Assembly: GCA_964247055.1 (NCBI GenBank)
Contig: OZ176051.1
Span: 9,672,001-9,736,000 of the forward strand
DNA from: Paragordius varius
Taxonomy: Eukaryota; Animalia; Nematomorpha
DNA: 64,000 bases
Reading direction: 5' to 3'
The notes under the pieces are model-generated. The model was not told where the DNA came from, did no database searches, and saw only the letters and a list, made by a program, of their open reading frames with translations. Shown one piece after another: positions 12,401-53,237 of this stretch. The position numbers and the translations under genes are program-made. Every line of letters begins with the position of its first letter. Positions within the stretch are counted from its first letter, which is position 1.

Positions 12401-13477
12401 ATTTTTAAGTTCAAAAAACACCTAAATCACAGCTTATTTCGATAGAAGAGGTTGATATCTAAAAATCCCTAATTGTGCAGCCATAATAATATACCATGCA
12501 ACAGTATAATAATATTTTCTCAGTCAATAAATTTTTCCAATCAATAAAAGACTTTTTTATTTAACAAACAATTAATGGAATATTTAAAAGTATTTTATTG
12601 TTTATACTCCAACAAAAATCATAAATGTCTTTTTTAAGTGATCATATGCATTTCTTTTTTCATGTTATATTTTATTAATATTCTCAATGAAAAAAATATG
12701 TGTTAGCTAAATTAACCAACGAGATAAATATTTTTTGGTTTTTCATTTTTTTATTACAGTACCTTAGTAGGTAAATTATTTCATTTATTTAGAAGCACAT
12801 AATGTATTTTAAGGATATTTTTGGATCTATTTAATTTTGGATATGTAAATAGAATATTCAAGATTGTACACTAGTAGCAATTACAAAAATTGTATTTATA
12901 TCCATTTAATGCTCATTAGAAAACGTTATATACCAAAGCCTGTTAATAATTTAATCTTTCCAAATAAAAATTATAAAAAAATCCAAAGAAGAATTTTATA
13001 TTAAATAATTATTATAATTCATCCAAGATATGCCTGTATAAAATTATATTGTAATATTTGGCCAAATAAAATTATTTCGTTAAATCAGATAATTATATAT
13101 CTCCTAAAAATAATATAACCAACCTTATAATCTTTAGAAGTTTTATTTGCAACAGTTGAACTTCGGTTTCTTGTTGAGGGTGATGAATTATTATCGGGTA
13201 TTTTCATTATCTGTTATTAATAACAATTATATTTTAAAAAAAATATAAATTATTTTAGCATTTGCACAACCTGTCCGGGAAAAAGAGTTCTTGAAATTAA
13301 TTTATTGTATTTTAATAACTGTGATGGAAGAATATTATATTTGAGAGATATGCTTTCTATTGTATCATTGTTTTTAACCTAGAAAATAACGCGTTAATAT
13401 ACTATATAGCTAGATTTTTCATTATCTGTATCAGATTCCATATTCATAAATTTTAACGATATAATATCAGTGGACAT
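5657..13477 (-). CDS. OXR1: Full-length OXR1/NCOA7 (mustard) family protein, LysM-GRAM-TLDc, 794 aa, 14 exons (13477-13403, 13378-13271, 13210-13124, 12267-12192, 11672-11512, 11376-11015, 10940-10441, 9897-9684, 9403-9280, 8928-8824, 8503-8342, 7713-7618, 6184-6111, 5897-5657)
   Basis: Exon sum 2385 nt and all phases match. LysM SYIVKNNDTIESISLKYNILPSQLLKYNKLISRTLFPGQ; GRAM-like GTLLFAPNMIMFD; KPIFMHLTF..NDFWYCM; DDWQ; complete TLDc. Small extra exons near 12300-12460 are not excluded. Confidence 0.9.
9406..9433. repeat. (TA)n microsatellite abutting the OXR1 exon 9 acceptor
   Basis: Uninterrupted TA run directly before the AG at 9405-9404 (minus strand). Confidence 0.9.
10067..10252. mobile_element. 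Palindromic Tc1/mariner-type MITE in an OXR1 intron
   Basis: TA|CAGTATAA...TTATACTG|TA; near-perfect inverted arms; same family as 3341-3536. Confidence 0.8.
11874..12157. mobile_element. pogo/Tigger-like MITE in an OXR1 intron
   Basis: TA|CAGTAAAAA..tatacggacaaa..gacaaatattttt..aaaagacaacc and its inverted counterpart ending TTTTACTG|TA. Confidence 0.75.
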
Positions 13478-13893
13478 TTGGAAGAAATAAATTCATAGGC
13501 GAACTAGATATAAGAACATATGAAATACCATGAATACATTATCCAGGGCGCAAAATATATATATTTACCTTGTTTGGAAACAATATCGCGACTCTTTTAG
13601 TACTTTAAAATCAATTTAAAATGAGGAAACTGCCTATTAAATTATTAAAGAATGTCAAAAACCTTATCCTTTTATTTTCACTAGCTTTTCACTTTGTCTT
13701 AGTTTACATTTAAGGGTAGTTTATACCCCAAAAAATTTTAAAATTTAATTATCCCAAATTGTTCTAGTGTAATAGAAAAAAAGCTTAAATTTTTTACAGT
13801 TTCCTGACTTCAAAAAATAGGGACAGCTTTTATTAAAAGAAACAAATATTTAATATAAAAACATCAAGGTTTGGCTGGTTAAATGTAGCTTAA

Positions 13894-14465
13894 CACTTCG
13901 ATTCAAATTGGATTATCTAAATACCCCAGACTAAATTTGAGTTAGGATTTTAAAAACTAGTTAAGAAACGGTCCCAATTTAAATTTATGCTTCTATCCAT
14001 AAAAATTATATAAATATGCCAAAATATCTAAATAAAATTTTGTTTTAAAAAAAAGTTCCATGTCAAACTACTTCGACGCTATTTATATTTCACAAAATTT
14101 TTGGAAAATATCGTCTTCATTTAATTTTAAGGGTAAAATTAAAGTTTTTTATTTAAATTACATCTAGCAATGATAGAAATAGAAAAAGCTGTTTATTTCG
14201 TATTATTTTTTAATTTTACCATTGCACGCATGCCACGTTGACTAAATTTTTACCTTTCGGTTTTAGCTTAAAATAAGTAATATCAAGTATTTTTGAATAA
14301 ACTTTTTTATATATTTTGGTTTATTAATGTTATATAAGTGCAAGATTTTGCCATGGTTTCGATTCCTTCCATATTTTTTAAAGGATTTAATTTTAAACAG
14401 GCCTAGGGTTTTTAACTACCCTAATTTGAATCGAAGGACTAAAATGAATGTGTTGTATCCAAGTG
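13894..14465 (+). mobile_element. piggyBac-like MITE family M1, complete ~572 bp copy
   Basis: TTAA|CACTTCGATTCAAATTGG...cctaatttgaatcgaa-spacer-TTGTATCCAAGTG|TTAA; TTAA target on both sides. Confidence 0.85.
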
Positions 14466-14524
14466 TTAAAGTAATTATTTATATTTTATAAATATAATAT
14501 AACACTGTGCAAAAAATAAGCTGA

Positions 14525-14526
<2 letters not shown>

Positions 14527-14564
<38 letters not shown>
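14527..14564. repeat. (TA)n microsatellite
   Basis: Visible TA run. Confidence 0.85.
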
Positions 14565-14566
<2 letters not shown>

Positions 14567-14623
14567 TATAATAGGAAAATGCATCATTAATGCCTTTGGT
14601 TTTGGGCCTTGTGAGTGATTTAA

Positions 14624-15100
14624 TACTTCTAGTTAAATTAGGGTATCAAGCTATTTTCAAGTAGTATTTTTAAAAACTACTGAAAGAAACTTTTAAATTT
14701 TAAATTCATGCTTTATGCTAAAAAAATTTATATATATTCCGAATTATCAAAATAAAATTTAGTTTTCGTAAAAAGGTTCCGTATCGAATTTGCGCCATTT
14801 TTATTTGTCATTTTCAAAAAATATCGTGTTTATTTGATTGTAAGCCTAAAAAATTTTTATTTTTCCATTCAACATTGATATAATCAGAGTTTTTTTTGAA
14901 TTTGTATTTACTTTATGCACACATATCATGTTGGCCAATTTTTCCCTTAGGTGTACCTCTAAATAAGTAATATCAAGTATCTTTGAATAAATTGTGCTTT
15001 ATATTTCGGTATATTAATGTTATAAAAGTGCAAATTTTTGCCATGATTCCCATTCCTTCCATTTATATGCGTTGTTATGCCGTTTCCAAAAGGCCTCAAA
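14624..15100 (+). mobile_element. Degenerate M1 copy
   Basis: Interior motifs (aaaaactactgaaagaaac, aaataagtaatatcaagtat, aagtgcaaatttttgccatg) match 13894-14465. Confidence 0.65.
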
Positions 15101-18100: not shown

Positions 18101-18516
18101 AAAAGTTTGCACTTATATAACATTAATGAACCGAAATATAATAAATATTCATTCAAAAATATTTGATATTACATCTTTAGGGGTAAAACTGCAAGGTAAA
18201 AATTTAGCCAAGATGACATTTGTGTATGAGCCAAATACAAATATAATGCAAAATATACCACTTTTTCTGTTTACTGTATATTTATATTATCAAAAATTTA
18301 TTTCATTAACTGGGTATAATATAATTTGGTGAAGAATACAAAAACAAGAGCTCTATAATATTAACCATATCATATTCATTAGTAAAAGAAGTGTGGGGGA
18401 AGGGCGTTGGAAATCTTAAGTAAAAAAATAAAAATCTTAAAATATTGTTAAAGGGGAATGGTAATATTTTTTTTTTAGCAAAATATATATTAATTTTTGA
18501 TAAAATTTTTATTTAA

Positions 18517-19093: not shown

Positions 19094-19563
19094 TTAATAA
19101 CCACCTAAATATAGATTTTTATGTATAGGTAAAAAAACATTTATATATTTAATAAAATATCACAAATAAAACAATCATATAACGGACAAAATACAAGGAT
19201 GTAATCGATTGTGTATATATATATAAGGGAAAACATAGGAAATGAATATGGAATTATATAGCGTTTATAAAAAAATATTATCGAACTTAATGCGTTTATC
19301 CTAAAATGCTCTGTTTGGGAAATTTAAAATACAATCAAATATATGCCAGTTTACCACTATTTAACCCTATTGAATGTTTTTTTCTAAAATAATTGTTTTG
19401 AAAAAGCATATATCTGGAAATTATTTTTATATCGGATTGTGTGATCAAAGAAAAATGAAATCGTCTCTGATACTTAGATAAAATTATGGTTAAAATTTTA
19501 TTCTCCAACCTTAGTTTTTTTAAAGCAACAATAATTAAAATTCTTTTTAAAATTGAAGAGATT

Positions 19564-20514
19564 TTAGTTTTCTTTCGTCGCACAATCTTTTGATTCTGCA
19601 ATATTGTTTCTAGAATATAGTGCATCTTTTTTTTCATAATAAAATTTTAATTCGTGAAAAAAACATTCGATAGGATTGAGCTGGGGCGAATAAGGTGGTA
19701 AATATATAAGCTTGTTTCTTAAATTACCCAAAATAGAAACATTTATGAATGGGTGCGTTGTCGCATATGACAAACGCATCCTGTGGTAACATGGCCAAAA
19801 ACTCCTCCAAAAATGGCTTAAAAGTCTCGCCATTGAACGCTCCCTGTTTGATGCTATAATTAACAACACCCTGTATGCCAATCATACACAACAAAGAGAC
19901 GTTTTTACCTATAATACAATAAACATATACCTTTATTAAAGCCCTTTACGATAGGTGCCTGTCCTGACGGTGCCCGACGGAATATATTTTTTGCTATCAA
20001 TGAAAACCCTGATTCATCTAAATAATAGATTTTGTCTAAGGGTATACCCTTCACAAGAGAGGCATACTCTAAATCGTTTCTGAATAACCAGCGAGGAATT
20101 GCGCTGTTGAGATTCCATATACACCTTTTGCACGTGTAGTATATTATTTTAAATATTTTATATAAGGTTTTTTTGGATAAATTATTCTGTAGGTAATTTA
20201 TTCAGAATCTCATCAGTCAATTCACAATCATTATCGAGGATTGTTTTGACCTGCTTGACTAGACCTTCATTGCATTTCGTTTTCCTAACCTTTTTCAATG
20301 GCTCTTTCTTTATTCCCAGATTTTCGTCTCATAGCATTTATGGAACTTATAGACATGTCTAAATCATCTACAAAATGACGAAACGATAATTCATGATTTC
20401 TTCCCGAAAATTTTGTAGGCCTTAGACTTTTTTTCATCTGACCAAAAATGATATACTAAAATTAACAAAAACGGTACTTTTCTTTTTTCCTCTACGGTTA
20501 AATGAAGTTGTCAT
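19564..20514 (-). pseudogene. IS630/Tc1-mariner (DDE_3-type) transposase pseudogene with 22-nt introns
   Basis: QQRNSSLVIQKR..IYYLDESGF (D1), FNK|GKNVSLLCMIG..GAFNGETF..FVICDNAPIHK (D2), LIYLPPYSPQLNPIECFF (E); HTH-like SFRHFVDDLDMSISSINAM; several frameshifts (near 20402, 20075, 19745). Confidence 0.85.
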
Positions 20515-20536
20515 ATTTTCATTCCCGATTTCATTA

Positions 20537-20810
20537 TTAAAGTCTAAATGAAAAAAAAACCATCGTTGCCAGGTACAATATTTTGTGTGGGTCTTATATC
20601 TTCGTCAACATAATCTGAATCTAACATTATAAAGGAAAAAACCATCAAGGACACCAAGACAAGTCTCTAATATCAATTCCTTTCCGTCTCATTATCACCT
20701 AAAGTCTAAATGAAAAAAACCATCGTTGCCAGGCACAATAGTTTGTGTCTGTTTTATACCAGCGTCAACATATTCTATATCTAAAATTATAAAGGAAAAA
20801 AATACCGCAA
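20537..20810. repeat. Direct tandem duplication, period ~161 bp, upstream of the transposase
   Basis: aaagtctaaatgaaaaaaaccatcgttgccagg(t/c)acaata...gtcaacata...attataaaggaaaaa occurs at ~20539 and ~20701. Confidence 0.85.
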
Positions 20811-21960: not shown

Positions 21961-24900
21961 ATGAGAATTTATGTCATTTTGTTAGCAGTGATATTTGGCG
22001 TTCTTCACTCTTTATTTATTAATAAATTATTCGAAAATGATAAAACATTTTCGCTCCTGTCAACTATGGAGCGAGAACTATCTTTTCGAACGGAAATGGT
22101 AAATCTAATTTATATTTAGGGTTTTTATTATTCTTTTTATAAAGAAATCGTTTATCAACCTAATATTCGTGAAGCTATAACTAATTTACTTCAAAATAAT
22201 CATACCGAATATCCGAAACAAATTAACGCTTTAAAACGGTTTAACATTTACCCAGAGGTATTAGAATTTATAATATATAGCTATTTATAGGTATGATGTA
22301 TCGGATATTAAATTATACAACATTTTCAAAAAGTAATAAATTTATCGAATGTTGGTGGATTAACCGGGCTGAAATGCCTTCAGTCAAAAGTTGTATTGGT
22401 AGGTTTTAACATAACCTAAAATACATTCTTGTTTAATATCAACACGAATATATTCCTTTATTTTTATAATTTTGATTAGGCATTGGAGATCCAATTTATT
22501 TCTATGTTTATTGTGTAATAGCCCTCTCAGGGCTAACCGCTTTTTCACTGTTTTTGATAGGATATTCCCTAAGGTAATCTTTTTCATCTTATTAATGTTT
22601 AGTGATTCTGTTTGGGGCGGATTGATTACTACGGCGTGCTTTTACTTTAATCATTCTGAGGTATTTCATTTTTGTATTTTTTTCAAAACATAGTATAAAA
22701 TAAATCAATATTTAACAAGTTTTGTTATTATTTTACTTATATTTAAATAAGATAAATATTATTGATATGATATGTTATAGGCCACACGGGTTCAATGGAC
22801 TATACCGCTGAGAGAAAGCTTTGGGTATCCGCTATTTGTTGCTCAAACATTAACTCTGATACTCATGATGAAGTATTTAATTTAAACTGTACAATTTTTA
22901 ATAATGATGACAAAAATTGAATTTTATGATAATTTTGATATAAAAATTTTTTTATATATAGAACTCAGAGAAATCAAACAGTTTTATCCATTTTATACTT
23001 ATTGTTGTCAATAATGCTACATCTTTCCTGGCAAGTAATATATAACTATTTATAATATGAATTTATATCGGAAAATACATTTATTACATATTTTACATCA
23101 TATTATTTATTTAGTTTATGCCATTTATTATGTTTACGCAAGTGGTATGTTTGGTTTGTACCTATTTAGCCTTATATCAGCCTTTGGATTGTTATAAAAA
23201 TTCTTGCAAGGATACAAATAGCGTTAATGATAAACACGAAAAAATAGCTGAAATCAACACATTTTGGCGGAGGAAAGCCCTGTTTTTGCGATTTTTATGT
23301 CTACAAATGGTATTTTAATTAATTTAACATAATATTTTTTTGATCTTGTATAAATTTAGTTAGATTACCATATAAAAAACGCATTAAAACATCAAATTTT
23401 TAGAGTTTAAATCCAAAATAACTATTCGAGCTTTTTTTAATTGACGATTAGATTTTTATAAGATTTGTTAGAATCACCCTGGTCCTTAATTCACAAACAC
23501 GACAGTTTAAGTTTTTACCGTGCAATAACGGCGTTTTTAGAAAAAATTTGTACAAAAAATGAGTAGTTATATTATAATAAATAGATTTTTGTGCTTTTTA
23601 CTAGATTTCATTGATCGTATCATGGATTCTCCTATTTTTTAATCCGTCCTTACTAATATCTTTTCATTGTTCTTCCATTGTGATTGGTTTTGTAAGTTTT
23701 AAAAATTTATATGATATTCCAAATTAATATAATTTATATATTGGTATGATTTATACATGACATTTTAGATTGCCATAAGGTATTTTGAAGTGCTCGCCTT
23801 TAAAAAATTGGATAAAACTCAATCATTACTCACCGGCTTTGGTTGGAAAGTATAGCTTAAATTGTTTTAAATAAAATGTTTATAGATGCTTTATGCGCTA
23901 TCCTACATTTCACTTACAATCGGAATGAAAGCGCTGCTCTCTATTGCTTTGAATTACAAAGATGATGTAAACCTTTTTATAGTTTATATGTATTGTATAT
24001 GGCCGTATAATTTTATTAATATAATTTTGAAGTTGTTTTAAATGTTTTGAAAATTAAGAATTATGTGTTAATATTGAAAAATAAACAATAAAAAGGGAAA
24101 TGATTATATCATTTTTATAATTTGTTAAATTTATTTTATTTGTGTAGAATCATGTGTATGAAATATTATTGAACAAATTTTCAAATTATCGGACAATCCA
24201 TACCATGCTCTACACTTGTAGTGCCGAATTCAATTTTTTGGCTTATGAGGTATTCATCTTAATTTAAAATTTAATAGTATCAAATTTGAAAATTGAAAAA
24301 AAATAGATATTTTGTGTTTTAATCACATATTTTTGATTTCAGACTTACCGGAAACTCTTTAATACTGGATTATTACCACTGAGCATATTGTCCATCACAT
24401 TAACCCTTTTAAAAGTATTTTTTATTATAATATGTAAACAACCTTACTCTAAATACTTATAAAATACCATTATTTTTTAGATAACAATTATTTTTTGCAA
24501 GATTGTAACTTATACCGTTCTATGTTTAATTTGAAATAAATTTTTAAACCATTTAGAGTACCTTAACCGCGGTTTTGAAAAATATAAAATTTTAATCTTT
24601 CTTTATTCCAATATTGAATGAAGTAAATATAAAGGTATTATGAATCTTTATTTTTTTACGAAATCATTTTTCTAACTAAAAATAGTGGTTTCTATTGAAT
24701 ATCGGATTAAAGTTAGCAATCGTTTTTAGTGATTCCTGACTTAAATAATCAAGAACAGAAAAAATACATTATAAAATTTTCGTGTTATTACCATCCTAAT
24801 ATTTGATATACATCATTATATAGTTAGAGCTTAACTAAAGTATGTAATGAGATTAGATTCATTCGAATAAATAATGTTTGTAAGCCAATTTTAATATTTT

Positions 24901-27900: not shown

Positions 27901-29236
27901 GCCCTGAATACTATTAAATGTTTTATAGAATTTTTTTTACTTGAGGTATTGAGTTATAATTATAAAATCATAAAATCAGGTAGGATTATGAAGTTAGATT
28001 GTAGAGATTACTTTCTAATCAATATAACTATAAATGGAAAATGCTGGCTTTGTGATCTGTTTTTGGAAAACCGGTAGACCCATTCAAATCCAAATTTAAA
28101 AGAATATAATCATTAATGGATGCCCTGACAATAGCTTTGCCCTTTTTTGAATTAGGTCCCCAGTTCGGGCCCACCCCGTGTAAAAAACGGTTTTTTTTCT
28201 TGAAAACAGTCCACAAAAATCGTGTCTTTGCAATCGGAAAACGTGTTGGACCATTCGATTTCAAATATGAGTTTTTTTACATTTTTCCCATTGCGCCAAA
28301 CATTGTCGGCTTGCTTTTTTAATTTAAACCCTTCCTCTCGTAAAATGCCATTTTTTACAAAAAAATTAAGTACACAAAAATAATTTTTTGAATCTATTTT
28401 TCGCCAAAGGTATGAGACCGTAAAAATTCATTAAGAATTTCGGATATTCCCTTTTAAAAGGCAAACTTTTTATTCGTGCGTTTTTTTATATTGGCTGCTG
28501 GGTATACAGATACCCGCTAAAAACTGCCCGGTCATATCGAAAAAGCGTGCCTTTGGAGCTAAATTTCAGAAAACCTATCAGGCCATATGAATTTAAAGGT
28601 TTTTAAAATAACACCCCTAACAAGGCAAAAATTTAGATCGTGGGGTTGTTTAAAATCAGCCGGTAATTAGGCCCTTCACGCCCTGAAAAATGCGCCGCCA
28701 TAGAACAATTTTTTAGTTATGAAGCCATATTTTCAAGAACTTATAAGAACATATGAAATCCATTATTCCAGATATTCCCTATATAAAGGCAAAAATTTTG
28801 CCTAACGCTTTTTTTATACCTGACCCTAGATAAGAAGCTACCCGCCAAAAACTGCGCCAACGCTAGTAATTTTATATAATTTAATGCTTTACTATTTTAT
28901 ATTGATGGAACCACAAGATAATACTAAACCAGCCAAACTGCTAAACATATTATTAGTGTTATATTTTACTAATAAAAATTAATCGACAAGTTTCGTTTAT
29001 ATAACACTATTTAGTTACAGTTAAAAAATTTTTATATTTTATTTTATATTTATAGATCATCTGAATGCACATTACCGGCTATATGGGATTTTATGGATCC
29101 TGACAATAAAAGAAGAGAGCCTGTTTGTTCAATTCTAAGACATAGAGCACACGACGAAAAATTATTTAAAACTTTGTATGAAAATCCCGAATGTACCATA
29201 GTTAAAATACTAAAGAAAAAACGGAAAAAATATTGA
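21961..29236 (+). CDS. DPY19: DPY19-family C-mannosyltransferase, multi-exon (first exons 21961-22098, 22120-22257, 22281-22398, 22480-22573, 22603-22660, 22781-22872; last exon ~29057-29236)
   Basis: [24 protein letters not shown]|[33 protein letters not shown]|[21 protein letters not shown]|[78 protein letters not shown]; all match recalled DPY19L1 motifs in order. Confidence 0.93.
28019..28866 (+). mobile_element. Truncated Helitron-like family H copy in the last DPY19 intron
   Basis: Reverse-complement homolog of the right ends of 31985-33729 and 43570-45498 (accggtagacccattcaaatccaaat..., ccccgtgtaaaaaacgg); begins A|TC and stops near a CTAG|T. Confidence 0.7.
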
Positions 29237-30076: not shown

Positions 30077-30416
30077 ATGCTGAAATTCTTTACACTAAAT
30101 TGGACCCAATATGCTAATTTTAATTCAAATTTTGCCTCTATCTGCAAGATGCATCGAAAAATTTATCTACGCCAATATCCAACAATAATTGTTCAACCAA
30201 ATGGGTCAACTATATCAACAAAATATTTTGAACCAAGAAAAATTATTAAAGTACATTCCTTATTATGTTTAGCTTCCGATTGATTTGTCAACTTTAACGC
30301 AAGAAGAAAAAAATAGAAGAGCCGCTCGATTGAAACCTAAATTTCAGATGAATGAAAGCGAAGAACTTGTCACAAAAATATCGAGAACAAAATATCTTAA
30401 AATTATGGGACGTTAG
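30077..30416 (+). CDS. MRPL55: Mitochondrial ribosomal protein L55 (bL31m), 105 aa, exons 30077-30250 and 30273-30416
   Basis: NSNFASICKMHRKIYLRQYPTIIVQPNGSTISTKYFEPRKIIK|LPIDLSTLTQEEKNRR matches the recalled MRPL55 pattern (..YPVLLVxxDGSTI.IRY.EPR.....PIDL.TLS.EER) once a 22-nt intron is removed. Confidence 0.9.
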
Positions 30417-31984: not shown

Positions 31985-33729
31985 GACGTCTCCCCTAGAC
32001 CTATATGGAAAAAGCGCTGAGTTAAATTCTTTCCTTTATAGGGCAAATATTTGAAATTATCTTTAATACCATTGTCTCATGGGTTATTCGAAAAAATACC
32101 TTAACACTAAAAAATCGTTATATGATGGCGTATTAGGGCATAAAGGTTCCAAATTAATGGCTAATATAAAAACGCCTGTCCTTAATTTTTTCCTAGTTAC
32201 AGGTAATATTTAAGGCTTTTAGTGAGCTCATATGGCTTTATAAATTTTCTGTAAATTAGCTCCAAAACAACGCAATTTATATATAGTGGCGCAGTTTTTG
32301 GCGGGTAACTCCTTACCCAGGGGCTGATATAAAAAAGCGGGCAAAATTTTTGTATATGGGGGATATCTGGAATTATCATGGATTCCATATGTTCCTATAA
32401 GTTCTTGGAAATATTGCTTCAAAAAATGTTCTATGGCGGCCCATTTTTCAGGGCGTAAAACTTTACTCAGCGACTCATTAAAAAAACCCCCTATACTAAA
32501 TTTTTTTTTAAGGGGTAATAAATATTTTAGACCCTTATGGAACTCACATAGTGTCATAGGTTTTCTGAAATTTGGCTCCAAAGGCATGCTGTATCGATAT
32601 GGTGAGGCAGTTTTACGCGGGTAGTCAACTAACCAGGGGCGAAACAAAAAACGCTTGATAAAAATGTTAACCCTAATTCGGGTAATACCTGGATCATGAT
32701 CGATTTTATATGTTCTTAATCGTTTTTGGAAGAATGGCTTCAAACCTAAATCAAAGCGCATTTTTCAGGTCGTAAAGGGGGCCTAATTAACGGCTATTTT
32801 AAAAAAACCGCTCGACTTAAATTTTTGCCTTTTTACCGGTAATATTTCAGGCCATTATTGAACTTATATGGCCTGATAAGCAATTAACTCCTGAACAACG
32901 CAATTTCGATATGGTGGCGCAGTTTTAGGCGGGTAGCTCCCTACCCAGAGGCTGATACAAAAAAGCGCTTGAATAAAATTCTTGCCTTTTTACGGATAAT
33001 AGTTGGAATCATGATTGATTCTGTACTCTCATTAGTTTTTGTAAAAATTGCCTCAAAACCAAATAATCTTTCTATGGTGGCGGGTTTTTCAGGGCATGAA
33101 GGACCTAATTAACGGCTAATCCTAAAAAACCGCACGAAAGTTTTTGTCTCATTACGAGTAATATTTTAAGCACTCATTGAACTCATATGATCTCATATGT
33201 TTTCTGAAATTTAGCCCCAAAGGCACGCTATTTCGATATGACGGGGCAGTTTTTAGCGGGTATCTGTTTACCCAGCAGACAATACGCACGACTAAAATTT
33301 TTGGCTTTTAACCGGGAATACCCGAAATCTTCATTGAATTTCTACGGTCTCATACCTTGGGCAAAAAATAGATTCAAAAAATTATTTTTGTGGACTTGGT
33401 TTTTTTGAAAAAAATGGCATTTTACGGAAGGGGAAAAAAGCGAGCCGTCTATGTTCAGCGCAATCGAAAAAAAGTAAAAACTAATCATAGAAATCGAATA
33501 ATCTAACATTTTCCGGAAAATTGTCTCAAAGACAGAATTTTTGTCGACCTCTGGTTTCATAAACCCGTTTTTTACACGGGGTGGGCCTGAAATGGGAGCC
33601 TAATTCAAAAAAAGGGCCAAGCTATTGTCGGGATATTTATTAATGATTATATTTTTTCGACATTTGGATTTGAATGGGTCTACCGGTTTCCGGGAAAGCC
33701 AACTTTTTTCATTTTTATAAATATATAGA
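31985..33729 (-). mobile_element. Non-autonomous Helitron-like element (family H) with internal ~158/~317 bp tandem array
   Basis: Minus-strand 5' end A|TCTATATATTTATAAAAATG at 33729; four ~317 bp units (anchors at 32291, 32607, 32919, 33246); colinear with 43570-45498; left (3') end not located. Confidence 0.65.
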
Positions 33730-34094
33730 TTATTATCGAATTGCAACATTCTCTCTTGAAAAGGTGAAAAATTAAGAGTAATATGCAAGCTAGTATTTAA
33801 TTTTCCATTGTAATTTCCGTTAAAATAGAGAAAGCTTATTAATTTAAATAGATTTTGGCATACTCTTCCTATTATTTTATGGAAAATGCAAAGAATGTAA
33901 ATTATATCTGCAAAATATTGGGAAATATTTCAATGTGAGAATTATTTTTGGATGAAACGAAAAATGAACTCGTTATTACCATAATTATTGTTTATTTATT
34001 TAAGTAATTAATTGATTATTACTTATATTACATGAAATATGTGAAAAATTTATTTTAAAAAAAATCCAACTTTTCACAACGGACAGTTAAGGTG

Positions 34095-35566
34095 ATGGTA
34101 CTTTTATTGAAACAAAAAATTATTGGTGCTAATACGTATCGTTTAGAATTTGCTTCCTACAAAAGTCTTATACGTAATAGTACATATTATGGTTTAAATC
34201 AGAATATCACCTGCAACGTTTATAAATCTTATAAACCAATTGAGTTGCTTATTAATAAATGGGTTGGGATTGCCGCAATCATTATACTTATTCTTGGTGT
34301 TTTGGGGAATTCCATAGGATTACACGTAGCTTTAAAAAGTGAATACGCATATATTCGAGTGTATTTAGGGCGAGTATTATATGCTATTAACTTGGTGAAT
34401 GCGATATTTCTGCTTCTATACCCGGTTCTGGATATCTTTGGAAGAAATCGATTGAAATGGTTTCAGTAAGTAGATATGCATCTTTTTATATTTTAAATTT
34501 TAACAATTTATAAATTTTGGCTTTATTATTTATAATTATAAGATTCGGAAAACCATGGAACCGCTACCTCACTACACTGCATTTTCCAATAGCGAAAACG
34601 TTCGTTAATTTTTCGTTTACCATTTACCTTATTTTCGCTTCCTGTCAAATGCTAGCTATAGCCTACCCAATGTATTATAAAACAAGAATTACCCGTCGCA
34701 AAATTAAATTCACTCTTTTATTCTGTTTTATATTTCTCTTGATTTGGTACATTCCCGCTGGTTGGTGGTTTGAATATAATGGAATCTCCAAAATTTGTGG
34801 GCTGAATAATCCAAACCAAACTCTTTATCACCGACAGTTTTCAAATTATGTGAGTACGCGGGAGAAAAGATCATGGATAGCGTATGGCTTTTTTCGAGAA
34901 ATCATAACAAAATTTATACCTATAATCCTCATCATAGCCTTAAAATATGTATCAGCAAAACGTCGTAAAAGCTCACCCCAAAAATTTATAACAACCCTAC
35001 CGTCCAAAAAACAACAATCAATCAGTCCATCGTGCATCACAGTGGAAGATGTGTGCACTAATGTGAAGACTTCTTCGCCAGTCAAAAAATTATCGCCTGA
35101 TGAGGGTTATGGTGGAACTCCTTTTTCACCCGAACAGATTTCCCCTAAGGAACTATCTTTTACGTTTTCTCCAGACAGGCCAGGTGGCCCCACTTCTCCA
35201 ACATCCTTTTTTAATGCCCCGACGACAAAAACAACCGCTTCCTCTAGCTTAGAATCACACAGTCAATCACCGACAACATTAAACAGAGCTAAACGAAGAG
35301 AGCTCGAATATCGTATCAGTATTCGCATGTTGGCAATTATGATGGCTGAATTCGTGATTTTCCTTCTCCCCGTGTCAATTTATATTCTTGTCGTAGATTT
35401 CATTGATTATTTATTGTCCTCTAATACGTCAGAAATTGCATTCGCTATCTGTACCTTGTTTGAATATGCCTATGTATCCCTAACATTCCATCTAAATTAC
35501 ACTTTTAACCCTGAGTATAGGAGGAGTGTTAATGCCGTCCTACAAAAACAATTCAAAAAAGTGTGA
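34095..35566 (+). CDS. Class A (rhodopsin-like) GPCR, peptide-receptor-like, 464 aa, exons 34095-34465 and 34543-35566
   Basis: Seven hydrophobic segments; TM1 LILGVLGNSIG; TM4 LLIWYIPAGWW; TM5 KFIPIILII; TM6 MLAIMMAEFVIFLLP; phase-2 intron CA|gtaagt..ag|A; start codon uncertain. Confidence 0.85.
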
Positions 35567-36245
35567 TAAAATTGTGTTTTATTGTATTGATATATGTAAA
35601 TCTTAGCAATAAATGTATAAATAATTGACTTATCTTAAAATTTTATATTTCTTAACACTAGACACACTATTTTGGATCCCTTCAAAACATATAAAACATT
35701 AAATTTGGCCCAAGTCGTTAATTTAATTTCGTCAAAATTAGTTTATCATTATTAAACTAATCTAATGACAATGTAAGTTTTAACTATAAATCTATATTTT
35801 GAATTAATATTAATTAGGATCTTGTATTGTAAAAGATTCTATTGTTATCTCCGTATTCTTGTAAATAATAATAGGTATGTTAAGTAGATTATCTTATGTA
35901 AAAGGTATGCCAAACCTTTTATCATATCGACATATAAGATTCCTTCTTTGAGTAGTAAAATGCGTTAGTTGTATCGGAAATCTTTGTTTATGTAAAAATG
36001 ATACATAATTGGATGGATGAATTTGGTAAATTTAATAGAAATAATAATTAATTAAATTAGGGAAAGAAAATGATAATTTATATAATTTAAATAGCTAATT
36101 TTTTTTGCACCATACATTTAACCAATTTAACTTCATATTCAGCTCCCCCAAGACTTCGAATATGTTATCCTCAAACTGTAATGCGCAATGAACCCTTTTA
36201 ATTTTATTTAACTAATTCAATTTAGCTATAAATCATATATAAAAT

Positions 36246-38812
36246 ATGCCGTTACACCGTTTACAAAATTTTATTCAGGAACAAAGGTTTTTTATGACCA
36301 AACAAAACTTAACGGATTATAAGGCTGAAAAAAATTGTACATTCTTTAAAATTTTATCGCCACTTGAACAAACACTCAAAGATATCATAGAAGTTGCCGC
36401 ACCATTGATATTGATATCCGGAATTCTGGGTAACAGCATCGGTCTGTACGCTTCTCTTCAAAATCATGCTGGTTATATTAGAGTATACCTTATGCGGGTG
36501 TTTTATGCCATAAATTTGGTGAATGCCGTGTTTCTTTTTCTTTTTCCCGTATTGGATGTGTTTGCCGAAGAGCATTTCTTACAATTCAGGTTATATAATG
36601 CGCCTTTTTAAATTTTATGCTAACAAAGTTAAATAATGCATAATATGTGACCAGTTTTTATTGGTTATTTTCCTACTGAACTGATATAAAAATTTGCATT
36701 ATGCTTATCATAATATAGCCTACTTTCCACCTGATCATAAAATCCTCATGCTCATTACTGTTTCTTTAATTTACGAAATACAGGCAAACTATTATAGTGT
36801 TATTTATGGTTAGTGCTAAGGCATCAATGAATTAAATATATAATTTTAGTTTTAATCATTTATATTTATTTTGTAATTATTAAATCTAAAAAAAGAAAAA
36901 TATTATCAATTGAAAAGGGTTTAATAATATTATTTATGATGATACGGATAATGAGGCATAATACATATTGTTATGAGGTCAGGATTCTCTTATTTTATTT
37001 ATATACTCTGTCAATTATTTTCAAAAACAAATACTCTATTTTTGTGCAATTTTAAAGAGCTTTATCAAAGGTTTAAAAGAGTAAAGTAAGAACTTAAAAA
37101 CTATTCAAAGAATTTTATTATCTGTAATTATAGCGTCATGCCTTTTATATTCACATACGGTTTAATGAGTAGTCTCTGAAAAGTAGTCAGACGATTAATT
37201 TGACACACACTTATTTTGTTCATTAGACATTAAATGTATACAAAGTTGAGTCTACCAAAAACAAGCGTATTTTTTTACCATTCGGTAATGATGTCTGCCT
37301 GAAGGAACAATTGCGATGAGCATTGTTTTTCATATTCCAGGAAAAAGAGTGTTAAGTCAACGTTTGCTGGTAGATACATATGGTAAATATGCTCATTTAT
37401 TAAAACATGTGAAGTTCGAACATTTAAAAGTTGTGATATCAATGTACAGGAAACTAAGAGATCTGGTAACCATACAACTGAGAAGACCATATGCATGTAT
37501 TATTGGGTGATGACCCAATTCAAACTTACCATTGATTGGCAGATGCAATACATGGATCGCAAAAAACAATCAGCAGACATCTACCAACAATTGGAAAGGT
37601 CAATAAAATTGGGTCACAAAATTTGAATAAACGTCAAAAAATAGCAAAATAACCTATGTAATCCTGCTCATTGAAAGAAAATTATTTTTGCATCGATTTG
37701 GGACCAATGGTGCTTAATTTTGCTAATTCAAAGCTGAAAAAACATGGTTTTGTCTTGTTGAGCCGGCCAATCAACATTTAAGCCAGATCACTTCGGCATA
37801 AAGATCATGCTCTGTATCTGTGTACCATAGCAATATTGAGTGTAAAATTCTGAAGCCCGTAGAAACCATTAAACAACGCTATTGCCAACAACTGTTTAGT
37901 TTAAACCAGTGGTAAGCATGGGACCAAAAAAAGGTTTTTATGGCCCGAATAATATATTAATTGTTTATGTACTTATTTGGGTATAAATACCTGCAAATGT
38001 GTTAAACAGCTATAAAATCCTTATAATGGTTGGCTTTTGACACAAGAAAATGTATTTTAAATTTTCATATTGAGTACCACTGATTTAAATTATGAATTAA
38101 TCGACAAACCACCGGAATGAGCCAGAATAAAAAGTGATCCCGGAATAGCAAAACCATTAAGACAACTTGAAATAACCTCCTCTGTAGATTCTTTCGCATC
38201 CGGCGTATCCTAATATGGCGCCATCTGAACAACTCATCGCATCAATGGGATGCATACTCACTAAGTAGCACTTCAAAAATTTCGAAAACGTCGGAAAATG
38301 GCTAGATAAATGGTTTCCCGCAAAAGACATCAGTTTATTGGCATGACATTACATATAACCTGAGAGATAGGCAAAATGTGTGGAAGCAGACGGACAATAT
38401 TGAATAAAAATCGATCTCATGTCGAGAGTCGTGCTTAAATATATTCAGCGGTTATATTGCTAAAAGATTTTTTATTTAGTATTTACTATTAAATATATAA
38501 TTTAACGCAATAAAATTTTTGAATTAATGTGCTGGTAAGAGGTTTCCTTAATAATTCCACGTCTGATAGGTTTACTGGTTATTTAATATCTACACCATAA
38601 CTTATGTATACATGCTGGTATTAGTAGACACTTTTTTGTTCATATTTGACTATATAATATTAAAAATAATTGAATTAATTTATATTTTTTATAATTTAAA
38701 TTTAAGACATAATTGTTTTTAGATAGTATAAATTTTTAATTGAATTCGGCCACTACATTATAAAATCAAAAAATGATTCCGCAAACTATCTTATATTGAA
38801 TTTTGAATTGTC

Positions 38813-38851
<39 letters not shown>

Positions 38852-41249
38852 ATATCAGGGGTGGCCAAACGGTAGACCGCTGTCGATTTCGTGCCCGCCT
38901 GAAAATTTTTAAAATAAAAAAAATATTTTTGCAATTTTTTTTCACGAAATAATTTTTTTTTATTTTTGATTTGCAATGTGCAATTTTTCTGAGATATTAC
39001 ATCGAATAACTAAATGCGATTTTAGATCTTTAATTGTGGATATGAATAATTTTTCCTCTGTAATAGATATATTTGTAGTAAAAATTGTCTTACTCTTTCT
39101 AAAAATGCAGCACGATTTAACCATCTTACATCTGTAAAAAATTGCGGCACGATACTTTTTTCGATTTAATGGGATTTACTATCTTGAAGCTTATGTCCGT
39201 TATTTAAAAACATGGCATGCAGTAATCCATAAAATCTGGTAAATTATAAAGATCTTTGCAAGAGCTAAAAAACCATTTTTTACTTCAATCTTGACTCCGT
39301 CGCAAGATGTCAGTTAATTATCAATTGTAAATTTAATAAATTGGATAAAATGTTTTAGTATGTGTACTGCGAGGTCTTCTGAATCATCGCAATAGTATTT
39401 TGATAAAATTATGATTTTATATAAAAAACTACTCAAAAATAAGTATTTTTGTGATATTTATTTTGAAATGGCTTCTGCTAACCCCAACGTTAATAGAGAT
39501 ATATATTTGTGTTAAAGTAAATGAATCTTTTAATGCCTAATATTCATGCGTGCCCGCGGGAAAAAAGGTTGGCCACCCCTGATATATGTATATCCATTTT
39601 TTAAAAAAAATTGGGTTTAAATAATATTTATTAGACATTTAATATATGATTTAATTAAAAGGCTTTATGTTTATATTAAATTATCACATCTTTATAACAT
39701 AATCGCATAACACTAAAATCCAAATAAAATAAGCTTTAGAGAAATAATATATTTTTTGAGCTTTAAAATATTTCAGATCCTTTACCGTTGGTATTTTGAG
39801 GCCAAATTTGATAGGATGTTATATTTCACAATTTACATTAAATTTAACTTATATTAATATTTTATAATATCACTCATGTGGTAAACAGATGTTATAGAGT
39901 TTTTGGCTGCTTTATATAGCGGACACAGTCACGACACCGGTTGAATCCTAGTTATATAATCGGATCTTATGGAAGTTTTGCAACAACTAGTTTTGTGAAA
40001 AAAACTAAAAGTTGGCCCCTAAAAATGATGTGAAAATGTTATTAAAATTTAATATTTTTATAATACATTTTATGTAAAATTTTATATTTAAAATTAAAAT
40101 ATAGGGAAATATTATATAACAACTTAAAAGTTGCTTTATAGTCAAAAGTTAATAAATAATGCATGGAGGAGCTGTTATTTAATGTATATGTATTTTATTT
40201 TAATCTTTATTCGTTATAGGTTTAATCAACCATGGAAATTTTATATAGTATTCATCCATTTTCCCATTGCCAAAACTTTGGCAAATTTTTCTTTTGGAAT
40301 TTACGCTACTTTTGCCCTCAGCCAAATGATAGCTGTATCCTTTCCTCATTACTATCGCCATCATTTTACCCGCAAAAAAGTTCAAATCTTTATTATTTTT
40401 TGCTTTTTTTACTATCTTTTTTGGTATATTCCTTCTGGGTGGTGGTTTGAAATTGTAACTATCTCAAACATTTGTGGTACGGATCCAAATTTAACCCTAT
40501 ATTCAAGACGTTTTACGCAATATAAAACGGCACGTGAGCGAAGGAGTTGGATAGCTTACGGTTTTATGCGTGAAATATTGACCAAATTTATCCCAATCAT
40601 AGCAGTGCTAGTTCTTAAATACTCGTCACTTAATAAACGCAAACGTATGTTTGGGGGAGGTACTCGAGTAGCCCCGACCCCTGTACAGATTATACCACCC
40701 ATATCGGGTGTCATGTCCCAAGCCTATGTGATAGACGTAGTTACCCTGCCCAAGGATCAAAAGGAAGAGGAAGCAGTTTTAGCGAATTCCAGTGGTGCTT
40801 TAAATGTCGATATCCCAATCTCTAAACCAGGGTCTCCAACCACACCCAAATTTTTTAAGGATGATGTTGGGGATGGAAATATTGATAGATTAGACAAAAT
40901 GGCGGATAGTTTACCAGCTGTTAGTGGAGTTGCTCCAACGTCCATTATTACACCGTTTGTTGCGGAAAAAATTAGAAAACGGGAACGAGAATATCGACTC
41001 AGTCTCCGTATGTTAGGTATCATGATGTTTGAATTTGTGATATTTTTGCTACCAGTTTCATTCTTTTTGTTGACAGTTGATTTTTATGATTACCTTTTGA
41101 CATCCAATATGTCAGAGATAGCATTTACCATATGTACTTTATTTGAATATTCATACGTTTCATTTACATTCCACCTTAATTATATCTTCAACCCGGATTA
41201 CAGAGTAAATGTCCACCAAGCACTCCAAAACAAAATCATTGAAAACTAA
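36246..41249 (+). CDS. Tandem paralog of the upstream GPCR, 457 aa, exons 36246-36589 and 40220-41249
   Basis: ILGNSIGLYASLQ..GYIRVYL.RV.YAINLVNA, HFPIAKT, YIPSGWWFE, ERRSWIAYGF.REI.TKFIP, EFVIFLLPVS, SEIAF.ICTLFEY.YVS.TFHLNY.FNP shared with paralog; same phase-2 intron position. Confidence 0.85.
38817..38855. repeat. (TA)n microsatellite at the hAT insertion site
   Basis: Visible TA run ending at the element TIR. Confidence 0.85.
38856..39581 (-). mobile_element. Internally deleted hAT (Buster/SPIN/Charlie-like) element in the GPCR2 intron
   Basis: TIRs CAGGGGTGGCCAA...TTGGCCACCCCTG; minus-strand remnant IVNPIKSK...TDVRWLNRAAFLERV resembles the hAT 'TEVRWLSRG' motif; 8-bp flanks only partly match (gtatatat/atatatgt). 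Confidence 0.8.
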
Positions 41250-43098: not shown

Positions 43099-43149
43099 TA
43101 AAACAGATTACTATCAATTCATTCAAAGGACAATATTTTTATAATATAA

Positions 43150-45498
43150 CTAGCTGGCCCTGTCACTCTTCGCTCTGACGTAGCCTCACTGATAATTATT
43201 CTTTATAATTTACAATAAATAGAGGTAATGGAGATAAAAAATAATAAAAAAAATAATTAATAAAAAGAATGTCTTTAATTATTCTTTTACGGGTTTTCCC
43301 ATAGGTTTAAATATTGTTTACTCGAAATTGACCATATTTAAAGTGTCCCTTATTAAATTCAATATTCAATTATCCTTGTATTTATTTTAAGATTTTTGTT
43401 TTACGAAATCATGGTTAAAAGTTATTTTGAAATGTGTTCACACGGGATCAAGGGATATATAAATCGTTTGTGGTCCCTTTAAGGAAAGAATCATATCATA
43501 ACTATTCCCCAGAAATGTGTTTAATTAAACTCGTATGGCTTTTATTTTTAAAAATTCCCCAAAATTCCCCTTACCCGGTAGATCCCTACCCATAGAACTA
43601 TATGGAAAAAGCGCTGAGTTAAATTCGTTGCTTTATAGGGCAAATAGTTGGAATCATCTTTGATACCATCGTTTCATGTGTTCGAAAAAATATCGCAATA
43701 CTAAGGATGGCGTATTTTTAGGGCATAAACAACTTAAGGGCTAATAAAAAAACGCCAGACCGTAATTTTTACCTAGTTACGGGTAATATTTTTAGCTTTT
43801 AATGAGCTCATATGACTTCATAAATTTTCTGTAAATTAGCTCCAAAACAATGCGATTTCTATATAGTGGCGCAATTTTTGCCGGGTAACTCCTTACCCAG
43901 AGGCAGGTTTAAGAGCGTAGGGCAAAATTTTTGCCTTTATATGGGGAGTATCTGGAATTATCATGCATTCCATATGTTCCTATAATTCTAATACCTTTTC
44001 TAAAATTTGGCTCCAAAGGCGTGTTGTATAGATATGATAACGCAGTTTTACGCGGGTAGCCTTCTAACCAGGGGCGAAACAAAAAAACCTCGATTAAAAT
44101 TTTTGCTATTCGGGTAATACCTGGAATCATGATTGATTCCATATGCTTTGAAAAATTCCCTCAAAACCCATAAGTCATTCTATGGTGGCGCATTTCGAGT
44201 GCAAGGGCCTAATTAAGGGGTAATTTAATAAAACCGCTCTACCTAAATTTTTGCCTTTTTACGGGTAATATTTTAAGCCCTTATTGAACTCGTATGGCCT
44301 GATAAGTTTTTTAAAATTTGCCTCCAAAGTCACGCTGTATCGATATGATGGCGCAGATATAAGCGGATAGCACCCTACCGAGAGGCTAATATAATAAAGA
44401 CGTTCGATATAAATTTCCTATATAGGGGAATACTTAAAATCATCTCATTCTATATGTTCTTAATAGTTTTTGGAAGAATGGCTTTAAAACTAAATAGTTA
44501 AATGATAGCGCATTTTTTAGGGCGTAAAGGGCCAAATTAGCAGTTAATATAAAAAATCCGCTAAACTTAACTTTTTGCCTTTTTACTGGTAATATCAGGC
44601 CCTTATTAAACCTATGAGCCTGATAAGTTTTCTGAAAAAAAACTCCTAATCAACGCAATTTCAATATGGTGGCGCAGTTTTAGGCGGTTAGCTCACTACC
44701 CAGAGGCTGATACAAAAAAAGCGCTTGGTTAAAATTTTTGCCTTTTTAGGGAGAATACCTGGAATCATCATTCATTCCTTATGCTCTCAAAATAGTTTTT
44801 GGAAAAATTGTCACAAAACCAAAAAATCATTCTATGGTGGCGCATTTTTCAGGTCGTGAAGGGGCTAATTAACGGTTAATTTTAAAAAAACGCACGCCTA
44901 AATTTTGCCTTGCTATGGGTAGTATTTTAAGGACCTATTGAACTCATATGGACTGTAAGTTTTCTGAAATTTAGCCCCAAAGGCACGGTATTTCGATATG
45001 ACGGGTCAGTTTTTAGCGGATACCTTACCCGGCAGCCAATATTAAAGAAACGCTCGACTAAAATTTTTGCCTTTTAGCAGGGAATAAATTTTTACGGTCT
45101 TATATTTTGGGCGAAAAAAGGATTCAAAAAATTATTGTTATAAACTTAATTTTAAAAAAATGACATTTTACGGGGGAGCGGGTAAAAAGAGAGCCTAAAT
45201 TAAAAATCGAGACGACTATGTTCGGCGCAATCGAAAGAAAGTAAAAAAAAATTATTTAAAATCGAATGATCCAACACGTGTTCCAAAAAATTGTCTATGC
45301 GATTTTTGTGGACCTCTGTTTTCAAAAAAAACGTTTTTTACACGGGGTGGCGAACTGGAGGCCTAATTAAAAAAGGGCGAAGATTGTCTGCGCTTTATTA
45401 ATGATTATATTTTTTCGACATTTGGATTTGAATGGGTCTACTGGTTTTCCAGAAACAGATCACCAATCCACCACTTGTCATTTTTATAAATATATATG
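43150..45498 (-). mobile_element. Non-autonomous Helitron-like element (family H) with internal tandem array
   Basis: Minus-strand 3' end gtca-gagcgaagag-tgac (decayed hairpin)..gggccagCTAG|T at 43150; 43570-45498 colinear with 31985-33729 with about five units; assignment of 43150-43570 to the same element is inferred. Confidence 0.65.
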
Positions 45499-50245: not shown

Positions 50246-50995
50246 TAGCTAACCGGTTTTTATTAGATAGTTAAAATCTTTTATATATGGCAATCTCGTT
50301 GAATCTATATACTTAAATTTTATAAAAAAAACAATATAAATATCAGATCCATTTCCATATTTTTAAATATGTTGTCGGTGTCAGATTATAAAATAAATAT
50401 ATATGAATTATTTTTGATCGAAATAGTCACTCAACGATATATGGTTAAATATTGTGATTACATTTTATACATTATCTCATTTTATACTCTAATTATATAT
50501 ACATATAATATTGCATTTATTTTGGAAATATTAGCACCACCCCGTAATTATTTCAATAAATTATAAGCAAATTATAATTGTGCTTTAGTCGTTAAAATAC
50601 AACATTAGTCAATAAATCATGCTACTTTTATTACAAAATGTTACACATAATGAAAAGTATTTTATGTGGATATATTTAAAGAGGGAAAATATAAAAATTT
50701 GGTATAGTAATGAGTATTAATACAATGAGAATACTGAACATCCAGATAGGTAAAGTCTGACCGGCTAGTCAAAACTCTTAACATATGTTCATCACATGAT
50801 CAAAATTTATATGAAATTTTAAAACCAAAAATGACTGCATCATTAGTAAGACTAGTTATTAAACTTTACCGGTCAAAAACTTAACCTTACATGTTGTATG
50901 CTTGATTTACAATTTTGATAAGATATAACAAATATTTTTTCTATTTAAAAAAAATGTCATCATATCATGTGAAAAAAAAGGTTTAAAGCATATTA

Positions 50996-53237
50996 TTAGG
51001 ACATAATTTTCGTATCATTCAGCGTTTGATTCGGTAAATTTGGCGTTGTGTTTTGGGTGTTTTGTTCTTTGAGATCTTTATCGTCGGTTTTATCATTATT
51101 GGTTGGATTTTCATTTGAGGGATGTGACGATGATATAAATAATAGTGGAAACATTCCTATGATACATCCTATAGTAATGCCTAAACAACGCCCCTAAAAT
51201 TTATTAAATAAAACACTTTAATTAGTTAATTTGAAAAAAAAGTAAATATTCATATCAATAAACGTAGTGTGTAAAAATGTAACTAGTTAGACTCGGTACT
51301 CACTAATCAAAAATTAAAACATTAAAATCATTATAAAATTGTATAAATAAAATCAATTATGAAAATTATATGGCTAGTTTGATACCCTGGAATAAATATT
51401 ATAACTTTAATAATAAGTTTATTACTTTTCACCTATAAAAAGTCATTATTTGAGTATTCGTTTAATGTTAAATCAAGTTTCTTTATAACGGTGCCATTGC
51501 GGGATTAAAATTTAAATAAAAAATAATATATTATCTTATGTATGATAATTATCATAAGGTGCTTTGTATACTATGTTATAAATAAAATAATTATTTTTAT
51601 GTAATACCTAATTTATATTACAAAATATCTTAAAATTATCGCCTATGTTTGCATTGGATCGTCAATTAAATTATAGAGTTAAAATTAATGTATTTACTAA
51701 TCAAGCTAAAAATTTTAAATTAACAAAAAAAGTGTCAAAAACCCGATTCTCAGTATATTAAATATTCGATACCTAATTAAAATACCCAAAAAATTTGACT
51801 TAATGGGTTCGTATTTAGACAATCATTTAAAATAAATATATTTAGCTCGTTGCAAAACTGAACGTATTAATTATTTTAAATTTACAGCAAAATCAGGAAA
51901 ATAAAAGTTTACGAATAAAGTTTTACAAAGGTTTAGGTGCAAAGTATTTGCTTATACCCATACCTAAATAACTCTGTAGCATTTTATATTGTATAAATGT
52001 AATTGCAATAGAATCTTTGATATTTTGTATTAAATTTTTGTAGTAAATTTAGTAGTTCAATAAAATTTGCAATATTATAACTTTTTATTAATGTTATAAA
52101 AAATCTATAAAAACTTACAGCGTTACTCCACAATTAAAATTATTGCTAAAATAGTAATAATCAGTTTTTAGCGCAATACGTATATCTTTCATGAGTAAAA
52201 TTTACAAATATTTTGTTTCCAAAATCCGTTCTAAATAAATGTCTCAAAAATAAGTTTGATTCTTTATGAAATAACCGTCCGTGTTTGCTATTTATTTTAT
52301 AATATAAAATATTTTTGTGCGAATGAGAATTTTCCTCACAAAACTTGTTTATAGTTTAAATTCGATATTGCAATTAAAACTTATTGATGGGACGTGAAAA
52401 AAATATGTCATATAAGTTAATGTTAAAATAATTATTTTGTGATTAATAGATTTTATCATTATAAATGAATCTGATTAATGGATAATTTAATATCGCGCAT
52501 AAATCATATTAATCATTTAATATAATAAAATGCTTTAAAACAAAATTTATATATGATTTTATATAAGTTCAAAAGATTTCTCGCTAAAACTGATAACTTT
52601 GTTAAATTTAAAAAATATTATTGAATGAAAATATACTTACAAAGTTTATGGCCAACATAACACTTTTCAAACTTTGTTGTTTATAATTGAGATTTGGTAC
52701 TGGCAATCCTAGAGATGATGCCAAAACTTCGACATAATGCGACAATCTATTACGTAAAAGAAATTAAACAATATATATGCGCACATCCAACTAGTGTATT
52801 AATTATAAAAAATACCCAATCCCTGCAACGTCAGAAACAATATTGCCCCAGGCGGCAGCTAAAATATATATACACAATACCAGCCATAGTTGAAATATTT
52901 AATACAGCTCCAAGCTTGTAATCAATATATTCACCCGCAGTAATTAAAATTATATTGTCTACAATTCCAAAACCCATAAATGGTATTCCATTATGAACCA
53001 TTACAGTAATATATTGGGATAATGTTGGCTTTTCGCACAAAGTTCGGCCTAATAATTATAACGTGTAACCTTACTATTTTTAACTTGATTATCAAAATAT
53101 TCGCGGATATATTTTTGTTCATCCTTGTTTAATTGATTAACAAAACGTGTAGCATCATCAACACTAAGAATTTTGGATATATAATGCCGTGAACGACAAG
53201 ATATAAAAATTCTTTTAAAACTTGGCTTTAAAAACAT
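50996..53237 (-). CDS. TMEM65: Transmembrane protein 65, 225 aa, exons 53237-53075, 53048-52881, 52858-52816, 52746-52641, 51193-50996
   Basis: PTLSQYITVMVHNGIPFMGFGIVDNIILITAGEYIDYKLGAVLNISTMAAAAWGNIVSDVAGIGLSHYVEVLASSLGLPVP...GRCLGITIGCIIGMFPL matches the recalled TMEM65 core; exon sum 678 nt. Confidence 0.92.

Follow-up and report, generated by a model that had tools for sequence, protein, structure and literature searches.

The DNA analyzed here is a stretch of 64,000 nucleotides (nt) from the horsehair worm Paragordius varius (Nematomorpha; assembly GCA_964247055.1, contig OZ176051.1, positions 9,672,001 to 9,736,000 of the forward strand), referred to below as the window, which has a guanine-plus-cytosine content of 23-33%. 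Four conserved animal genes within it, coding for homologs of OXR1, DPY19, MRPL55 and TMEM65, carry seven segments of 21-29 nt that a first-pass annotation had read as GT-AG introns. Our analysis recovered all seven at the coordinates and on the strands claimed, with lengths of 24, 21, 23, 29, 22, 26 and 22 nt, and every one of them begins with GTA and ends with TAG. The peptides that the annotation expected removal to restore were likewise obtained, in the flanking frames it gave; in the list below a slash marks a junction between codons and hyphens enclose the residue of a split codon.

Positions 13379-13402, minus strand: OXR1 intron 1, 24 nt, phase 0, junction probable, restoring SYI/VKNNDT; two in-frame stops if retained.
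Positions 22099-22119, plus strand: DPY19 intron 1, 21 nt, phase 0, junction exact, restoring RTEM/GFYY; in-frame stop if retained.
Positions 22258-22280, plus strand: DPY19 intron 2, 23 nt, phase 0, junction exact, restoring YPE/LFIG; frameshift if retained.
Positions 22574-22602, plus strand: DPY19 intron 4, 29 nt, phase 2 (from exon lengths), junction exact, restoring YSL-S-DSVWGG; frameshift if retained.
Positions 30251-30272, plus strand: the sole intron of MRPL55, 22 nt, phase 0, junction exact, restoring KIIK/LPIDL; frameshift if retained.
Positions 53049-53074, minus strand: TMEM65 intron 1, 26 nt, phase 1, junction probable, with the flanking peptide NQVKN-S-RTLCEK; stop if retained.
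Positions 52859-52880, minus strand: TMEM65 intron 2, 22 nt, phase 1, junction exact, restoring STMA-A-AAWGN; frameshift if retained.

Retention of any of these segments gives a stop or a frameshift, as had been claimed: lengths of 21 and 24 nt are divisible by three, and these two segments carry stops in frame, whereas the five others shift the frame, so that an unspliced transcript would terminate early in every case. Exons were searched singly against Pfam profiles or orthologs, and phases were derived from exon lengths. Five of the seven junctions (the three in DPY19, the one in MRPL55 and TMEM65 52859-52880) are exact to the base, in that the residues on their two sides correspond to adjoining positions in an independent Pfam profile or in Caenorhabditis elegans DPY-19, with no residue gained or lost. 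Across DPY19 intron 1 the Pfam Dpy19 profile passes from position 37 to position 38, and exon 2, which covers positions 38-83, aligns with residues 73-118 of C. elegans DPY-19 (PDB 7zlg). Intron 2 falls between residues 118 and 119 of the same protein; residues 5-40 of exon 3 align with 123-158, which places residue 1 opposite 119. At intron 4, residue 188 of C. elegans DPY-19 is matched by the end of exon 4, residue 189 by the split codon and residue 190 by the start of exon 5, and the Pfam profile continues unbroken up to exon 6, whose start corresponds to position 156, as expected. In MRPL55, exon 1 ends at position 66 of the Pfam Mitoc_L55 profile plus one residue and exon 2 begins at position 68, the motif flanking the junction (PRKIIK/LP.DL) being kept in the horsehair worm Gordionus montsenyensis, in krill and in bees. 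At TMEM65 intron 2, exon 2 ends at position 38 of the TMEM65 profile, the split codon supplies position 39 and exon 3 continues from position 40.

The two remaining junctions lie at or beyond the edge of a conserved domain and were graded probable. The exon downstream of the OXR1 intron begins at position 3 of the LysM profile, and the exon upstream ends in Y-I, which is compatible with positions 1 and 2. Support for this intron is weaker because its upstream exon (13403-13477) comprises just 25 codons from the ATG; the identity of the OXR1-like gene itself is confirmed by TLDc exons farther downstream. TMEM65 intron 1 is located upstream of the Pfam TMEM65 domain and links an ATG-started exon of 54 codons (53075-53237) in frame to the exon that holds the start of that domain. 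This first exon had no relative among PDB structures and no usable match in the Atlas.

The same genes also contain longer introns that could be placed on the same grounds, those of DPY19 all running from GTA to TAG and separating exons that are collinear with C. elegans DPY-19 and with the Pfam profile:

Positions 22399-22479, plus strand: DPY19 intron, 81 nt.
Positions 22661-22780, plus strand: DPY19 intron, 120 nt.
Positions 22873-22961, plus strand: DPY19 intron, 89 nt.
Positions 23035-23114, plus strand: DPY19 intron, 80 nt.
Positions 52747-52815, minus strand: TMEM65 intron, 69 nt; Pfam TMEM65 profile continuous at 53/54, exon 4 beginning at position 54.
Positions 51194-52640, minus strand: TMEM65 intron, 1447 nt; profile continuous at 88/89, the last exon beginning at position 89.

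Together with two introns of a receptor gene family described further below, 15 introns are placed exactly in the window, a set that leaves aside several later DPY19 introns of about 0.1-1.8 kb. Their sizes (21, 22, 22, 23, 24, 26 and 29 nt; 69, 77, 80, 81, 89 and 120 nt; 1447 and 3630 nt) fall into three classes, with seven introns at 21-29 nt, six at 69-120 nt and two at 1.4-3.6 kb, and none at all from 30 to 68 nt; the bimodal distribution proposed in the annotation is thus seen in the window as a size gap. GTA starts 14 of the 15 and TAG ends 14 of the 15, regardless of size. As splice ends are common to all the size classes, a single spliceosome acting on a single consensus is the simplest reading. 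The tiny introns are not the majority (7 of the 15 placed), and the intergenic DNA around these genes is long and repeat-rich. All of them lie at most about 610 nt from the start codon and within the first four introns of their gene, and the kb introns are mostly found farther downstream; with four genes only, we regard this 5' bias as a lead. A repeated element, recognizable by related short open reading frames (e.g. ...PLEPNFRKP...) in both orientations, was found at 28000-28900, 32200-33100 and 43900-45400, and one copy of it sits within the last long DPY19 intron. This element probably swells the long introns.

The comparison with Gordionus montsenyensis (GCA_954871325.2), which belongs to the same phylum, provides one positional homolog. 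Two introns, of 42 and 43 nt, are present in its MRPL55 gene (L001:3001-3439), and the 43-nt intron, with GT-AG ends, interrupts the same codon boundary (between K and L of PRKIIK/LP.DL) as the 22-nt intron here. The shared boundary implies that the intron predates the split of the two worms, its length differing about twofold. Gordionus differs in that the introns examined, at 42 and 43 nt, are about twice as long as the tiny introns of the window. The bee MRPL55 ortholog is intronless. For exon 1 of the window's MRPL55 the only relative in the databases is the Gordionus montsenyensis protein (59% identity), and both share an N-terminal signature that arthropod orthologs lack.

Within the tiny introns the conserved part of the 5' signal is short: GTA is constant, and positions 4-6 vary (TAT, AAT, TTA, ATC, CAT, AGG and TTG). 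The 3' ends were aligned for eight tiny segments, namely these seven and a 22-nt segment in a transposase gene (see below), with 160 other GTA..TAG segments of the window serving as background. All eight have a T at position -9, counted from the 3' end, and W-A-T stands at -10/-11 in 7 of 8 as opposed to 19% of the background segments, a test that is post hoc with n=8. No classical pyrimidine tract was found in the tiny segments. From these alignments we propose, purely as a hypothesis, a candidate branch site that precedes the 3' end by 7-11 nt.

Considering the positions and frames of the segments, the exact collinearity at five of them, the consensus they have in common with longer introns, the one positional homolog and the size gap, all of which can be read directly from the DNA, the segments are very probably genuine U2-type GT-AG spliceosomal introns that have shrunk to 21-29 nt in a horsehair worm genome. 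From these observations we infer that the segments are excised from RNA, that they have a branch site and that the ordinary spliceosome acts on them. The tiny introns would most likely be removed by the same spliceosome that removes the 69-120 nt and kb introns of the same genes. Recognition would take place across the intron, by means of a minimal 5' GTA, a 3' TAG and a candidate U-A-U branch site some 7-11 nt before the 3' end. One of the tiny introns at least, that of MRPL55, is of older date and measures 43 nt in Gordionus. Every unspliced RNA would contain a premature stop, and errors in splicing these introns would therefore be harmless. The claim that very short spliceosomal introns occur in conserved animal genes therefore draws comparative support, with five of the seven placed exactly, one homologous position in Gordionus and a common consensus, and remains a prediction from DNA.

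Several of our observations weigh against this interpretation, and they bear mostly on the alternative that the gene models are wrong, i.e., that the segments stay in the messenger RNA or that other splice sites are used, the apparent fit being due to chance in AT-rich DNA. GT..AG segments of 18-45 nt and GTA..TAG segments of 20-30 nt that bridge two open frames were counted and compared with eight control end pairs of equal base composition, and no excess over the controls was found in the window, at 26% guanine plus cytosine. Look-alikes abound in DNA so rich in AT. The pattern alone cannot therefore identify such introns, and the case rests on homology. For OXR1, with its 25-codon first exon, and for TMEM65 53049-53074 the support consists of frame continuity. 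At the latter site a 41-nt alternative (53029-53069) is likewise open in frame; among the sites that have at least 30 open codons on both flanks this is the sole exception, any other alternative GT/AG pair failing to fit there. The candidate branch site is affected too, in that positions -6 to -8 form another window whose score equals that of W-A-T at -10/-11. In addition, two of the longer introns each contain an unused look-alike, formed by their donor and a nearer TAG: 25 nt in for the 69-nt TMEM65 intron (52791-52815, minus strand) and 33 nt in for the 120-nt DPY19 intron 5 (22661-22693, plus strand). Splicing to either TAG would lead to a stop. As these are skipped, GTA...TAG is insufficient for use and something further must decide. 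Wrong gene models would nonetheless have to explain how five junctions came to be collinear with independent profiles or an ortholog with no gain or loss of a residue, why each retained segment breaks an otherwise intact conserved gene and why Gordionus has an annotated intron at the identical MRPL55 site, and on this evidence we consider them improbable.

Two further alternatives are less probable still. The segments could be removed from DNA rather than RNA, in the manner of the internal eliminated sequences of ciliates or by programmed DNA elimination, the assembly then representing the germline state. The sizes are like those of short ciliate eliminated sequences and DNA elimination does occur in some nematodes, but the GTA...TAG ends match those of introns of 69 nt to 3.6 kb in the same genes and are not TA-bounded repeats, and at the MRPL55 site Gordionus has an ordinary GT-AG intron of 43 nt, which makes this explanation very improbable. 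Interruptions without function, in decaying gene copies or through assembly insertions, might be expected in a transposon-rich genome in which a transposase copy at 19.5-20.5 kb has a true frameshift; that seven independent GT-AG interruptions should each restore the frame when removed, within four otherwise intact genes, leaves this explanation with just as little likelihood. Least probable of all is an endonuclease and ligase route outside the spliceosome, as for the 26-nt XBP1/HAC1 intron, which is similar in size: the GT-AG ends and consensus here are the same as in long introns, unrelated housekeeping genes are affected, and the segments would be explained without recourse to conserved paired stem-loops.

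Introns shrunk to this extent are already known in a few other systems. In a survey of 51 animal genomes published in September 2026, introns shorter than 30 bp were found solely in myxobolid myxozoans and Dicyema, and more such lineages were predicted (PMC13644364). Dicyema japonicum and Dicyema sp. have animal GT-AG introns that are mostly shorter than 30 bp, with a median of 27 bp and a mean of 38 bp (PMC6543705, PMC6736024), at conserved exon-intron positions and with a 5' signal reduced to GTa (PMC13644364). The introns described here are similar to these in being GT-AG introns of less than 30 bp with a 5' signal of GTA followed by variable positions. In Dicyema, however, most introns are tiny and belong to a compact 67.5-Mb genome in a parasite of about 30 cells (PMC6543705, PMC6736024), whereas the worm described here is large and macroscopic, and its tiny introns form a discrete class beside introns of 69-120 nt and transposon-filled introns of kb size. 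A further difference is the good conservation of the 3' TAG, present in 14 of the 15 introns. The myxobolids Henneguya, Thelohanellus and Myxobolus, which are parasitic, have a median intron of 22-27 bp, intron positions conserved in comparison with other animals and reduced splice motifs (PMC13644364). Intron size, reduced splice motifs and parasitism are all likenesses to the present case. The candidate branch A of myxobolids moves away from the AG with intron length, unlike the candidate here, whose distance from the 3' end is constant (n=8), and the lineage here belongs to the Ecdysozoa and has a genome that is not compact.

Outside animals, tiny introns have been described from ciliates such as Paramecium (about 25 nt), Nyctotherus and Stentor (15-16 nt) (PMC5014332, PMC9505925). 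They span the same size range, and retention creates a premature stop here as described for Paramecium. The GTA...TAG-like ends of ciliate tiny introns also resemble those of the window. Ciliates, however, are not animals and have tiny introns only, and the exclusion of a ciliate code in the first-pass annotation holds, all three standard stop codons being in use here. Human ultra-short introns of 43-65 nt are spliceosomal and lie below the usual limit, with SPF45 acting in place of U2AF (PMC4463651, PMC8363638). These are about twice as long as the introns described here and are rare exceptions, not a class.

Tiny introns of less than 30 nt are thus already known as a kind, from Dicyema and myxobolids, and the comparison supports horsehair worms as a putative third animal lineage with them. 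Full-text literature searches on hairworms and intron size, which did not extend to the principal publication on hairworm genomes (Cunha et al., 2023), returned no report of such introns in hairworms, and introns are not mentioned in the Gordionus genome preprint or in two other papers using hairworm genomes. We would go further only tentatively, and with slightly less than even confidence: hairworms might be the third animal lineage to have acquired introns below 30 nt independently, and the first to have done so apart from genome compaction. Located towards the 5' ends of genes, their introns of 21-29 nt would form a discrete class that has its consensus in common with introns of 70-120 nt and with transposon-swollen introns of kb size, and they would be roughly half as long as their homologs in a different hairworm family. 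The myxobolids and Dicyema are both tiny parasites with compact genomes (PMC13644364). A large ecdysozoan with a free-living stage and a transposon-rich genome would uncouple the miniaturization of introns from the compaction of genomes. If so, the minimum intron size that an animal spliceosome tolerates can drop fast within one phylum and without miniaturization, and a pair of lengths of about 22 nt and about 43 nt at one site within that phylum could help to find what sets this limit. There would also be practical consequences, as many hairworm gene models may be broken by gene prediction and read mapping programs whose minimum intron is set to about 20-40 nt, and the loss of universal animal genes reported for Nematomorpha could be inflated as a result. 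The genes described here would end up truncated or frameshifted in any tool that does not allow very short introns, which bears on the low completeness scores of hairworm genomes (71.6% in the Gordionus genome preprint).

The transposase gene mentioned above, of the DDE_3 (IS630/Tc1-type) family, occupies a frame spanning 19540-20620 on the minus strand, with a frameshift near 19730, and contains one segment of the same appearance:

Positions 19909-19930, minus strand: 22-nt GTA...TAG segment bridging 90 and 60 open codons.

The Pfam DDE_3 match begins at the first residue after this segment. A second 22-nt intron in the transposase was considered and rejected, as no GT-AG segment mends the frame near 19730. 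The gene may be a decayed copy, or may belong to a transposon family with a tiny intron.

The TLDc exons of the OXR1-like gene are present twice, in near-identical blocks at 177-2515 and 5660-8503 on the minus strand, about 5.5 kb apart, and positions 14-66 and 114-169 of the Pfam TLD profile are each matched in both blocks. The arrangement points to a tandem duplication affecting the 3' portion of the OXR1-like gene, or else to alternative 3' ends. An Rfam scan of the window gave no match.

Downstream of MRPL55 lies a family of receptor genes on the plus strand, which supplies two of the longer introns counted above:

Positions 34059-35563, plus strand: receptor gene family, first stretch.
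Positions 36243-36589, plus strand: receptor gene family, second stretch.
Positions 40220-41246, plus strand: receptor gene family, third stretch.
Positions 34466-34542, plus strand: receptor intron of 77 nt, in one copy.
Positions 36590-40219, plus strand: receptor intron of 3630 nt, in the other copy.

Among 5.8 billion proteins the receptor gene at 34514-35563 has nine relatives, all nine of them from Gordionus, with 29-43% identity and E-values of 1e-37 to 1e-73. These relatives and that of MRPL55 place the source of the window in Nematomorpha, and identities of 29-59% mark it as a species other than Gordionus montsenyensis; the window's own proteins appear to be absent from the collection. 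Chromosome OX940783.2 of Gordionus carries both MRPL55 (88.86 Mb) and receptor genes (84.1 and 88.6 Mb), which are at most 5 kb apart in the window. The linkage is a loose one, and no DPY19 was found within 10 kb around the Gordionus MRPL55. The intron interrupts two copies of the family here at an identical codon and in the same phase, and the two Gordionus receptor genes examined (P0007 and P0012) are intronless, which implies either a gain of this intron here or its loss in Gordionus, followed by a swelling of about 50-fold.

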